A stretch of 63,268 nucleotides of DNA, counting the filler, from Octopus bimaculoides (taxonomy: Eukaryota): NCBI RefSeq assembly GCF_001194135.2. It is 5 parts of 5 records of this genome, joined end to end, with 100 filler letters (N's around TTAATTAATTAA, not from the genome) between each part and the next. Parts side by side here need not be neighbours in the genome. Positions count along the whole stretch, not along the records: positions 36,499 to 54,626 come from NC_068987.1; 4 more parts are not named here. One strand, written 5' to 3'. The notes beneath the pieces were generated by a model, which worked only from the letters and a program-made list of their open reading frames with translations, was not told the origin of the DNA and made no database searches. Positions 37,177 to 51,299 of the stretch are shown here, piece after piece; positions within the stretch are counted from its first letter, which is position 1, and every line of letters begins with the position of its first letter. The translations under genes were made by a program, and so were the position numbers.

Positions 37177-37350
37177 CTCCTGTACCACCTGCAAGGATGT
37201 TAGAGATACTTCTTGCTTGTTGGATATCTTCTTGGAGTTCAGGCAATCCAACAGCAACACACTTGCTAAGAACTTTATCAAGTTTGCGTTTATCTTTTTC
37301 TATCATAGCATCTCGCAATTTTTCACGTATATTTTCCGCTGTCATTGTGC
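37177..37350 (-). CDS. Repeat exon 13 (type A, 174 nt): [57 protein letters not shown]; may be terminal (reads through to GGT TAG)
   Basis: ggttgctag acceptor, GGAG/GTTAG at 3' end; overlaps ORF 37172..37459; no further repeat exon found downstream. Confidence 0.88.
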
Positions 37351-49300: not shown

Positions 49301-51299
49301 AGGAATTTTAATAGTCAAAAGAATGTAAATGAAAAAAAAAATCACAATGATGATAGTTTCTCATAAAACTTTTAAAGTTTTGAAATAATTCATCCTCGCA
49401 GAGAAATGTAATTAATCATGTCAGATTTTCTATAATAAAAGTTATAAGTTACAAATGAAGGTATTTTTTCCGAACTACGCATGCTTGGATTAGGGAAGAG
49501 AGAAGACATATCATTGATAAGATCGCGAATGGTGATGAAAGGAGTGTGACAAACAGTTGATTGATTGTCTAACCAATAGATTAAACAAACGATTGATTAG
49601 TTTGTTGGTTAGATTAACAAACCAACCGACTAACTATAAAGGAGTGAAATTAAACACTTGCATTTGTTTATTATTATTGGCATGACGGTCCTCCCAAGAT
49701 TTAAACAAGATTTGTTTCAACACACGAATTCTCATCAAGAATCTTCTAAACCAATTTACTGCACTTTAAAGATAATGCTTATTTCCAATTTTGGCATAAA
49801 GCCAGTAATGTTAATGATTTTGGGAGCAGTCGACTAAATCGACTTCAGTACCTAACAGGTACATTATTTTATCACTACCGAAAAGCTGAAAGGAAAGAGA
49901 GACTGTAATGGGATTTTGCTCCATACAAAAAGGCAGAAGAAATACAAGGTATAATAATAATTGTTTCTAATTTCAACAGAAGCCCAGCAATTTTGAGAGG
50001 AGAGTTGCTCGATACTATTGATACCAGTACTTAAACAGTGGTTTATGTTATTGTCCTCGGAGAGATGAAAGACAAATCGAGATTTGAATTCAGAAAGTAA
50101 AGATCCAGAAGAAATACTTAATGTATTTTTCAATGTGCAATTGATCCTGCTAATTCATTACCCTTTAAATATAGATCTCTGTTTTATGCACAAAGCCAGC
50201 ATTTTGAGGTGGGGGTTAGACGATTTCATAATGTAATGTAAAGAGTTCATAATGTAAAGAGTTGGAGCAAATACCACAAGGCAGCTTTTCGGTACCCTAA
50301 CGATTCGGCTAGGTCGCTAACTTTATTGTCTAGGATTTAGACACAAGGCCAGCAATTTTAAATCGTGAGGAGGGTGATTTTTTACACATGTCCCAGTACC
50401 AGGGTGGTAAAATTTATCGACTTCCGAGGGATAAAAATCAAAAGTGACATTGAAGGGATTTGAACTTAGAACGTAAATACCCGAAAAAATAGAGCAAGGT
50501 CATTTTTCCACCTCTCTAATGACTCAACCAATCCACTACCCTTTAAAGACAATAATATGACATCAAAACCACAAACCTCCCCAACTGCCACTAAGGCTCT
50601 TCAGGGCATGTCTGGCTTTAGAGAGATCGATTCCAAGTTCTGGATATTTGGCATCTTCAGTCTCCACAATGATTTTCTTTAATGTTGCTATATCTTTGCG
50701 CCGAACTGCCATTGCCAACTGATTCCGCAAAACATCAGGAGATTTAATTTCTGCCAATATTGGAGATAATTCGTATTAGCTCAACTACATTGTATTTTTG
50801 TTGATTTTTGAAAGATGAAATTAGCGAAATACAACATCAATAGCTTCGTTCCTTTTCTTTCAAATTACGGGAATTATTTTAAAACGAGTATCTAAGAAAA
50901 CCATAGTCGGTTTAATTTTCACTCCTACAAGGAAAAGGTTATAGTAACTTAAAAATTAAATACAAAGAAATTTCAAATTACAGAAATTAACTGAGATTTT
51001 TGAGTTGTTTTTTTAATTTTATTTCTTTTATTCTTTCTTTCTTTTATTTATTTATTTATTTATTTATTTATTTATTGCTGCAGAATGAAAATTACGAATA
51101 TTTTGAAATTTTAAACACATCTAACCTCCTGTGCCTCCTTCGAGAATGTTTAATGTCTTTCTAGCTTGTTGTATATCATCTTTCAGTTCTATTATTCCTG
51201 AAGCTAGACATTCATTAATTACTTTACCTAAATGGTATTTATCTTTACTCTTCATTGCCGCTTGAATTGCCTCTTGAAGCGCTTCAACTGATTTCGTTC
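37177..51299 (-). CDS. Multi-exon gene segment: 13 tandem phase-1 exons each encoding one 58-59 aa alpha-helical repeat (2271 nt, 757 codons if all spliced); gene ends not identified
   Basis: 13 mutually similar exons read by hand. Each has an AG acceptor and GT donor in phase 1, length 174 or 177 nt and no in-frame stop. Motifs L-R..L..A, [KR]D, L..[VI]I, C, [YM]PEL..D, AR..L and a Gly-rich end are conserved while introns are unrelated. Confidence 0.9.
38989..39228. repeat. Palindromic element (~75-bp inverted arms) between (TA)n tracts
   Basis: 38989-39061 is the near-perfect reverse complement of 39152-39228. Confidence 0.85.
39115..39162 (+). ncRNA. Candidate minimal type-I hammerhead ribozyme (variant core), Penelope-type
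   Basis: GTCT-CCGATGA-A-GGGATAT(atgaa)ATATCCC-A-GAAA-C(AGCT)G-TA-AGAC: stems I, II and III all pair; core differs from CUGAUGA at position 4. Confidence 0.5.
40097..40270 (-). CDS. Repeat exon 12 (type D, 174 nt): [57 protein letters not shown]
   Basis: ggttgtctag acceptor, GGAG/GTTTG donor; not in ORF track. Confidence 0.9.
40396..40460. repeat. (TA)n microsatellite; others include (GAT)n ~23835-23872, (CA)n ~38170-38200, (CT)n ~41323-41358, (GT)n ~54400-54560, (GATA)n ~54830-54895
   Basis: Directly visible. Confidence 0.95.
42051..42227 (-). CDS. Repeat exon 11 (type C, 177 nt): [58 protein letters not shown]
   Basis: ttgttag acceptor, ACAG/GTTAG donor; overlaps ORF 42046..42234. Confidence 0.9.
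44199..44372 (-). CDS. Repeat exon 10 (type B, 174 nt): [57 protein letters not shown]
   Basis: gtgtcttag acceptor, GGAG/GTTTG donor; not in ORF track. Confidence 0.9.
44634..44807 (-). CDS. Repeat exon 9 (type A, 174 nt): [57 protein letters not shown]
   Basis: gatttttag acceptor, GGAG/GTATA donor; not in ORF track. Confidence 0.9.
45308..45481 (-). CDS. Repeat exon 8 (type D, 174 nt): [57 protein letters not shown]
   Basis: tttttatatcag acceptor, GGAG/GTCTG donor; overlaps ORF 45276..45461. Confidence 0.9.
45908..46084 (-). CDS. Repeat exon 7 (type C, 177 nt): [58 protein letters not shown]
   Basis: tctattaag acceptor, GAAG/GTTTG donor; not in ORF track. Confidence 0.9.
46320..46515 (-). 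mobile_element. tRNA-head SINE family 3 in intron 6-7
   Basis: Reverse complement of the family at 59990-60200 (tggcagaatcgttag A-box-like, gttcaaa B-box-like); older copies at ~49795-49900 and 50340-50540. Confidence 0.75.
46687..46860 (-). CDS. Repeat exon 6 (type B, 174 nt): [57 protein letters not shown]
   Basis: gatgccag acceptor, GGAG/GTTCG donor; overlaps ORF 46655..46885. Confidence 0.9.
47155..47328 (-). CDS. Repeat exon 5 (type A, 174 nt): [57 protein letters not shown]
   Basis: ttttaaatag acceptor, GGAG/GTCAG donor; overlaps ORF 47126..47317. Confidence 0.9.
47400..48000. repeat. Composite repeat in intron 4-5: direct duplicate plus fold-back; same family at 57790-58370
   Basis: ggagaaaaac.attagttt..ctatttgccaacgtaaaatggcagtcctgat.aggacggtgttactacc at ~47420 and ~47725; inverted copy at ~47930-47995. 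Confidence 0.75.
48338..48511 (-). CDS. Repeat exon 4 (type D, 174 nt): [57 protein letters not shown]
   Basis: ttcgattag acceptor, GGAG/GTTAG donor; not in ORF track. Confidence 0.9.
49087..49263 (-). CDS. Repeat exon 3 (type C, 177 nt): [58 protein letters not shown]
   Basis: cattctctag acceptor, CAAG/GTTGT donor; not in ORF track. Confidence 0.9.
50577..50750 (-). CDS. Repeat exon 2 (type B, 174 nt): [57 protein letters not shown]
   Basis: ttggcag acceptor, GGAG/GTTTG donor; overlaps ORF 50563..50757. Confidence 0.9.
51126..51299 (-). CDS. Repeat exon 1 (type A, 174 nt): [57 protein letters not shown]
   Basis: ttttattag acceptor, GGAG/GTTAG donor, open frame; not in ORF track. Confidence 0.9.

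Follow-up and report, generated by a model that had tools for sequence, protein, structure and literature searches.

Introduction

Position-dependent super-repeats are the hallmark of the few known ruler or spring proteins. In the A-band of titin they follow 7- and 11-domain patterns of Ig and FnIII domains, and in nebulin they consist of 7 modules of 35 amino acids (aa) each. Spectrin offers another tandem architecture, in which repeats of about 106 aa are joined by a continuous helix. Here we describe a super-repeat carried by an undescribed, predicted helical domain of 58 aa in the genome of Octopus bimaculoides (assembly GCF_001194135.2). It lies within a window of 63,268 nucleotides (nt; the whole stretch of DNA that was analysed), in the piece at positions 36499-54626 that comes from NC_068987.1, which is AT-rich eukaryotic DNA with a guanine-cytosine content of 0.22-0.39. 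Thirteen exons of one module each follow one another there as three A-B-C-D units and a final A. We consider it fairly probable that they are a slice of a long A-B-C-D array of a kyphoscoliosis peptidase-like (KY-like) gene, grown by block duplication and encoding a flexible, multivalent chain.

The likeness to titin and nebulin lies in module types that depend on position, in the closer resemblance of modules at the same position than of neighbours, and in a growth that seems to have proceeded by duplication of exon blocks. The array differs from both in its predicted three-helix fold (against Ig/FnIII domains or a single helix), its 4-module unit of 58-aa modules, its predicted flexible, glycine-rich linkers and the lack of a known filament partner. 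No Ig, fn3 or Nebulin family was matched by the conceptual product in Pfam, and the predicted fold is all-helical. With spectrin rods the array would share the tandem arrangement of three-helix bundles; here, however, the modules measure 58 aa and are predicted to be joined by coil, and neither a Pfam Spectrin match nor a significant PDB sequence or Foldseek match was found.

Thirteen exons in a four-type order

The piece contains 13 minus-strand open stretches, each with a similar peptide of about 58 aa. In transcript order the exon lengths are exactly (174, 174, 177, 174 nt) three times and then 174 nt, as the initial annotation had it, with an AG acceptor and a GT donor in 13/13 cases. All exons are phase 1-1 and all introns phase 1, and every exon holds one module of 58 or 59 aa, which gives the A-B-C-D unit a length of 233 aa. 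The introns measure 375, 1313, 575, 1009, 294, 602, 426, 500, 261, 1971, 1780 and 2746 nt in transcript order, and the piece includes two runs of N, at 41359-41629 and 53963-54062. When a profile of the module was run against all six frames of 36499-54626, exactly 13 matches of 87-98 bits were obtained, the runner-up reaching 6.9 bits; there is therefore no hidden or decayed module in the introns that could be read or in the flanks of the piece. The array itself is truncated, as exon 1 opens with an AG acceptor and the GT donor of exon 13 lies 678 nt from the edge. Three units and an A are thus a lower bound and not the size of the array, which probably continues past exon 13, outside the piece.

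51126-51299, minus strand: exon 1, type A, 174 nt; 94.0 bits against the profile; sister-species ortholog of equal length and splice sites, 94% identical
50577-50750, minus strand: exon 2, type B, 174 nt; RRKDI, E-x-E...YPE; ortholog 96% identical; nearest paralog V5 (B)
49087-49263, minus strand: exon 3, type C, 177 nt; linker MNPKQ; ortholog of 177 nt; nearest paralog V10 (C), tied with V7 (D)
48338-48511, minus strand: exon 4, type D, 174 nt; RDKSAL; sister-species ortholog; nearest paralog V3 (D)
47155-47328, minus strand: exon 5, type A, 174 nt; nearest paralog V8 (A), 60% core identity
46687-46860, minus strand: exon 6, type B, 174 nt; RQKSI; ortholog in another octopus assembly (P0008) 90% identical
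45908-46084, minus strand: exon 7, type C, 177 nt; linker DFSEE; nearest paralog V10 (C), 60%
45308-45481, minus strand: exon 8, type D, 174 nt; with B in the window-only tree, with D module V7 in the joint tree
44634-44807, minus strand: exon 9, type A, 174 nt; nearest paralog V8 (A); ortholog P0119 90% identical
44199-44372, minus strand: exon 10, type B, 174 nt; RRKDI; nearest paralogs V5 and V9 (both B)
42051-42227, minus strand: exon 11, type C, 177 nt; linker EYPQT; spliced to exon 12 in A0A0L8GLC5_OCTBM (P0001)
40097-40270, minus strand: exon 12, type D, 174 nt; RDKSAL, Gly junction; 98.1 bits; nearest paralogs V11, V3 and V7 (all D)
37177-37350, minus strand: exon 13, type A, 174 nt; GT donor; nearest paralog V4 (A)

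The two kinds of module, odd (A and C) and even (B and D), can be told apart at several columns of the alignment. Column 32 is V, I, L or T in odd modules and Glu in every even module; column 36 is I, L, M or F in odd modules and Tyr in even ones; column 43 is I or V against L or F; and column 11 is Q or E in even modules. Accordingly, the motif E-x-E-x-x-x-Y-P-E described for the even modules was recovered, and its odd counterpart, C-[VIL]-A-x-G-[MILF]-P, holds for most modules but not for module 1, which has G-I-I in place of G-x-P, nor for module 9, which reads S-V-V-S-G-M-P. The junction residue behaves as had been proposed, Gly in odd modules and Asp or Glu in 5/6 even ones: the codon divided by the intron reads G|GN ahead of odd exons, and G|AN ahead of all but one of the six even ones. 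For exon 1, this codon takes its first base from an exon that lies outside the piece. Within the odd modules, column 52 is Ile in all A and never in C, and the GG-x-G linker of A contrasts with a charged or prolyl C linker of little or no glycine. Within the even ones, column 21 is Ile in B and K, V or R in D, column 17 is Arg in B, and D modules mostly have Lys at column 14 and Thr at column 16. The short signatures noted earlier for single types were also found, namely MNPKQ, DFSEE and EYPQT as C linkers, RRKDI, RQKSI and RRKDI in the three B modules, and RDKSAL in D modules 4 and 12. The extra codon of C is true of exons 3, 7 and 11 of the window; it is not general, as the module spacing of a related Octopus vulgaris protein (P0154, see below) indicates.

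Periods of two and four

Mean pairwise identity falls from 49% within a type to 42% between types of the same parity and 34% across parity. The same structure is visible without any labelling, because identity at lags 1 to 8 (0.36, 0.42, 0.32, 0.48, 0.33, 0.41, 0.34 and 0.53) peaks at 4 and 8, and then at 2 and 6. In neighbour-joining trees of the 13 window modules (500 bootstraps), odd and even modules separate with 92-95% support and A forms a clade at 84%; C does so at 86%, a value that drops to 48% when the linker and the junction residue are removed. These residues were left out of exact permutation tests, which used core columns 5-52. The division into odd and even was the best of 1716 partitions, A against C the best of 35, and B against D the best of 10 distinct ones. 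Chance is excluded as the source of the pattern. Period 2 is very strongly supported, and period 4 is clear for A against C; for B against D it is weaker in the window alone and is recovered when paralogous modules are added.

For this last comparison, modules of paralogs were labelled by position only and then pooled with those of the window over the core columns. In the pooled set, A against C was the best of 1716 partitions and B against D the best of 462 distinct ones. The nearest paralog module was of the same type for 12 of the 13 window modules (one of them tied), and a joint tree over the core columns recovered A, B, C and D groups with individual bootstraps that are low because the sequences are short. 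Type profiles trained solely on the core columns of the window were also applied to 131 foreign modules. Confident C cores turned out to carry non-glycine tails, A cores mostly GGxGG, and B or D cores mostly GGGRGG, so that core type and linker are independently linked in these modules. Comparison with the paralogs thus indicates that the four types are real and predate the divergence of the octopus arrays.

The initial annotation had expected the module tree to group by position modulo 4 and modulo 2, and grouping by position is what we observe. The expected clades were obtained for the odd/even split, A and C, and fell short for B and D in the window-only tree. As for the nested hierarchy proposed to stem from block duplication, the order of the types and the lag profile speak for it, but the unit trees of the different types do not agree; block duplication is therefore inferred from type order only, and its history cannot be reconstructed.

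Age of the array and selection

Same-type exons are 51-62% identical in DNA, with an identity at third codon positions of 0.36-0.38 (0.30 being expected from composition), and corresponding introns of different units have nothing in common beyond low-level repeat matches. Since synonymous sites are saturated and introns unrelated, the duplications must be ancient and are no artefact of assembly; on these sequence comparisons, recent duplication, gene conversion and assembly error can all be considered excluded.

In a sister species, a contig of 4.8 kb (L009, Logan SRR11869391) can be aligned with window positions 52104-47887 at 83-85%. Its copies of exons 1-4 are 94-96% identical to those of the window and retain both the lengths (174/174/177/174) and the AG/GT splice sites. 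Between these exons the ratio of nonsynonymous to synonymous substitution (dN/dS) is 0.26 (dS 0.116, dN 0.030), and by this measure exons 1-4 are functional coding exons under purifying selection. In exon 1 (51126-51299, against L009:1403-1576) O. bimaculoides has A-S-G-I-I-E-L and the sister species A-S-G-T-P-E-L; a nearly invariant Pro has therefore been lost from module 1 by the window species.

Predicted fold

AlphaFold2, given an alignment of the 13 modules, predicts a single module to be a three-helix bundle with helices at residues 4-17, 20-33 and 36-52, at a predicted local distance difference test score (pLDDT) of 85. An A-B-C-D unit is modelled as 12 helices plus four linkers of 7-10 residues in coil conformation; its pLDDT is 80 and its predicted template modelling score (pTM) 0.50. 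The modules are thus predicted to be separate three-helix bundles connected by short, unstructured and mostly glycine-rich linkers. The residues that distinguish odd from even modules lie, on the predicted structure, where helix 2 ends and in the turn that leads to helix 3.

This fold has no close match in the resources that we searched. A Pfam scan of the 756-aa conceptual product gave nothing at the cut-off, the best match being VMAP-M2 with 24.8 bits against a cut-off of 27.7. Sequence searches of PDB, with a single sequence and with the profile, returned chance matches and de novo designed helical proteins only, and Foldseek searches of PDB, run on the module and on the A-B-C-D unit, found none at E <= 0.001, the top template modelling scores belonging to generic helical proteins.

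Linker confidence differs along the unit, with block pLDDT values of about 85 for A-B, 60 for B-C and 57 for C-D. The A-to-B intron had been described as the shortest of each unit, which is correct for the three units of the window (375, 294 and 261 nt) but not for a short A-B-C-D contig (L002), where the B-to-C junction is the shortest. By our estimate, any one junction class would be the shortest in all three units by chance in about 1/16 of cases. In a long contig of another organism (ENA ERZ21867824, described below), two of 44 junctions are intron-less, both of them between an A and an even module (L001:5878-6225 and L001:9968-10315), and adjacent modules are therefore translated together. 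The A-to-next introns of that contig have a median of 704 nt, and their trend toward shorter lengths is not significant (one-sided Mann-Whitney p = 0.08). Intron lengths, fused exons and the modelled A-B linker suggest that the A-B pair may be a tighter sub-unit.

Related arrays

An exhaustive profile search returned 213 proteins at E <= 0.001, among them P0154, P0002 and P0082, and most of these are single-exon open reading frames (ORFs) from unannotated assemblies. The window modules match modules of independently annotated members significantly, and when P0154, P0151 and P0149 were compared with the piece by tblastn, 212/216 high-scoring segment pairs fell inside the 13 exons. Word-indexed protein searches were far less productive: the full product had no match, one unit found only its own gene model and one fragment, and the module alignment found four fragments. 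A literature search turned up no description of this repeat. The window, L009 and most modules of the ENA contig share the arrangement in which a phase 1-1 exon of about 174 nt holds a single module.

Some members are more informative. P0001 (UniProt A0A0L8GLC5, O. bimaculoides) splices exon 11 to exon 12 and then reads through into the following intron. P0154 (O. vulgaris CAI9725887.1, 2069 aa) starts with Transglut_core and Ig-like_KY domains and a charged region, followed by 16 modules, the first three of them even-like and those in the middle in the order A B C D A B C D; module lengths vary, as B and C modules of 59 aa occur. P0002 and P0151 are RefSeq "uncharacterized" models, the former with A-B-C and the latter with a degenerate fourth module in addition. 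The C-terminal array of the KY-like O. vulgaris protein has the same 58-aa module, Gly-rich linkers and A-B-C-D order as the window. It differs in that window modules are at most 60% identical to it, which points to paralogous positions or a paralogous gene, and in that the piece has no KY-like exon.

The inspected 61 kb of the ENA contig (ctg115097l, L001) contain at least 45 modules on 174-nt phase-1 exons, most of which show an AG acceptor together with a GT donor, a candidate in phase 1, that gives 174 nt. The first module is 79% identical to the first of P0154. The first nine are mostly even-like and the following 36 alternate strictly between odd and even, as do 13/13 in the window. Writing E for an even module, the linker classes begin with about 4.5 units of A E C E and go on with A E C E C E C E A E C E C E C E, and identity at lag 4 (0.50) exceeds that at lags 2 (0.46) and 6 (0.45). 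The "strict" A-B-C-D order claimed for the array hence applies to the slice in the window, but in this relative period 4 lasts for about 4.5 units and then decays to C-E dimers. On present comparisons, the strict A-B-C-D order is found locally, in an array whose evolution proceeds by steps of 2 and 4 modules. Between the ENA contig and P0154 the first array module alone is clearly orthologous, and no positional orthology of window modules with either was found.

A gastropod KY-like protein (P0149, Haliotis asinina XP_067666272.1) has five weak, diverged modules (9-18 bits each) after its Ig-like_KY domains, and a different C-terminal region after these helical modules. On this evidence, a KY-like head may have been combined with helical modules before the cephalopods arose. 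Similarity of another sort was seen to protist-looking myosin tails (P0047, P0054 and P0139) and other long proteins (P0012 and P0150), with 6-17 weak profile matches each. The weak profile similarity concerns a repeated pattern, L-x-x-A-[IV]-x-x-x-D-x-x-x-L-x-x-A-[IV]-x-E-A-x-x-x-G-L, but their period is roughly 50 aa (by eye), they are without Gly linkers and show no evidence of one exon per module, and no Pfam family covers their repeat. This likeness may be partly compositional, and homology is not established.

Gene assignment and alternative explanations

The KY-like domains (Transglut_core and Ig-like_KY) stand upstream of the array in the paralog or parent locus. In O. bimaculoides a KY-like "partial" gene (XP_052825369.1, 806 aa) lies on the reverse strand of CM046607.1 at about 38.877-38.896 Mb, and an ortholog of the first P0154 module is found 8.8 kb downstream of its last exon. 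Locus L010, on the same strand and some 150 kb farther downstream, holds an ortholog of P0154 module 11, more modules and the exons of LOC128248363, all of them inside a gene model whose 5242-aa product overruns the locus at both ends. Across L010 and L011 (CM046607.1, about 38.695-38.906 Mb, reverse) there are three models, namely the KY-like partial gene, LOC128248363 (192 aa) and the 5242-aa model, with which LOC128248363 overlaps; in P0154, modules stand side by side that are not neighbours in O. bimaculoides. From this layout, it looks like the public annotation splits one giant locus, which we estimate would have about 90 modules if the 5242-aa product consists mostly of modules. In our preferred reading, which we hold to be probable, the slice is an uninspected part of the giant array that follows the KY-like gene on CM046607.1; the alternative is a paralogous array.

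A module of one exon would have been copied, and the copies would have diverged into an odd and an even form; duplication of this pair would have given a four-exon block, and such blocks would have been multiplied by unequal recombination. As the exons are phase 1-1 and their lengths divisible by three, each duplication could take place without breaking the reading frame. The duplications would predate the split from the paralogous arrays, with purifying selection acting since; this history from monomer to dimer to tetramer is the one that we infer from the modules. In the product, a KY-like cytoskeletal module would be linked to a long and flexible, multivalent chain of small helical domains, in which the alternating surfaces at the turn between helices 2 and 3 could offer two (or four) kinds of periodically spaced sites for binding or packing. 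By analogy, and judging from the modelled linkers, such a chain would probably serve as a scaffold or elastic tether more than as a rigid ruler. In vertebrates KY is described as a sarcomere-associated transglutaminase-like protein.

Several observations weigh against this explanation. In the window-only tree B is monophyletic yet weak (25-49% bootstrap) and D is not monophyletic, as module 8 groups with B; the identity matrix gives unit-level trees that are not congruent between types. The geometry between modules is unreliable, the alignment behind the A-B-C-D model having 3 sequences. Pfam scan and tblastn detected neither a KY-like nor any other non-module exon in 36499-54626, and the piece does not overlap the two chromosome loci fetched, L010 and L011. 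No transcript was found for the slice, the one spliced model of it (P0001) derives from the same assembly, and the statement on function is based on the predicted fold and the role of vertebrate KY and not on an assay.

A rival reading is a stand-alone, repeat-only gene, a paralog apart from the KY-like locus and lacking a KY-like N-terminal region. The 3.3 kb upstream of exon 1 have no recognisable exon, window modules are at most 60-62% identical to all modules of P0154, the ENA contig and P0151, megablast matched the piece with neither L010 nor L011, and a repeat-only RefSeq model, LOC128248363, does exist. However, the phase-1 acceptor of exon 1 implies upstream exons, LOC128248363 is itself inside the 5242-aa model, and the inspected part of the locus amounts to about 60 kb of 165 kb or more; we hold a separate gene to be unlikely, if a serious contender. 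The regularity of the slice could also be that of a molecular ruler in the sense of titin or nebulin, with a 233-aa period that matches a filament spacing and an array lying straight along the filament. The exact exon lengths kept across saturated divergence, the strict A-B-C-D order of the slice, the lengths retained by the sister species and the sarcomeric association of vertebrate KY would all fit. Yet the predicted coil linkers, mostly rich in Gly, favour a flexible chain over a rigid ruler, a pTM of 0.50 for one unit points the same way, period 4 breaks down in the related 45-module array, P0154 modules differ in length and no partner filament is known, which makes a ruler improbable.

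Thirteen tandem, similar exons of near-equal length and identical phase also bring to mind a cluster of mutually exclusive exons, as in Dscam, with one or few used per transcript. Here, though, lengths in multiples of three and symmetrical phases mean that joint inclusion keeps the frame, the annotated P0154, P0002 and P0151 hold many consecutive modules, a relative has two neighbouring modules in a single exon, and a strict alternation of two flavours is sensible only if neighbours are translated together. Gene models, proteins and fused exons of relatives thus all speak for joint use, and we judge exclusive splicing very improbable. There is next to no chance that the pattern stems from a recent segmental duplication, an assembly artefact or coincidence: repeats abound in the region and its assembly has two gaps, but the divergence of same-type exons, with third positions near random and unrelated introns, is incompatible with a recent origin, an independent assembly of the sister species reproduces exons 1-4 and the permutation tests exclude chance. 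The flexible multivalent chain of a KY-like gene remains our preferred explanation. A bolder version of it, a giant cephalopod protein of more than 5000 aa with a KY-like head and about 90 modules, acting as a cytoskeletal scaffold or spring whose A, B, C and D modules engage partners in a 233-aa register, is speculative and rather doubtful; if true, it would be a titin- or nebulin-like solution reached from an unrelated and undescribed domain, for instance in obliquely striated muscle.

The domain is undescribed, with neither a Pfam model nor a solved relative, and the cephalopod gene region that carries it holds tens of copies. The analysis provides a working definition of the module and of its four types, for an array that is old and under selection, and a probably mis-annotated giant gene is flagged. 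The array is also a clean case in which to study how block duplications of 1, 2 and 4 exons build, and erode, periodic arrays.

Assembly gap and repeats in introns and flanks

41359-41629: assembly gap of 271 N inside the intron between exons 11 and 12, with (CT)n on its low-coordinate side and (AT)n on its high-coordinate side

No contig carrying the exon-11 ORF is on record to close this gap. Exon 11, like exon 12, is phase 1, and splicing the two gives the codon G|GA (Gly); this junction is used by the UniProt model from the same assembly, and C stands directly before D in paralogs. That no exon hides in the gap had been argued from the unbroken period. For a single exon this is reasonable though not proven, since odd/even alternation is unbroken in the 13 modules of the window and 36 of the ENA contig; a hidden pair is disfavoured because it would need more than about 500 nt, against the estimated 271. 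Continuity of the array across the gap is likely but unproven.

Upstream of exon 1, a foldback element of about 410 nt occupies window positions 52620-53031. Its arms (52620-52703 and 52948-53031) are 80% complementary, the whole stretch is 70% self-complementary, and it contains near-mirror ORFs at 52655-52912 (plus strand) and 52717-52956 (minus strand). A possible mariner-type helix-turn-helix in the palindromic ORFs at 52655-52956 received no Pfam support. In the intron between exons 4 and 5, an element of about 130-215 nt is repeated at 47419-47994 in direct and inverted copies: 47781-47994 is self-inverted, 47419-47546 and 47723-47853 are direct copies (90%), and 47474-47616 and 47855-47994 are inverted ones. 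It may be a cluster of miniature inverted-repeat transposable elements (MITEs) or of short interspersed nuclear elements (SINEs), and no Pfam family is matched by a 114-codon open stretch that crosses it. Further inverted repeats are present in the intron between exons 12 and 13 and upstream of exon 1 (38980-39236, 37504-37564, 52099-52159/52505-52565 and 53340-53545/53753-53960). Microsatellites of the (CA)n type stand on either side of the second assembly gap (53963-54062), and long TA, CT and CA microsatellites are common across the introns.

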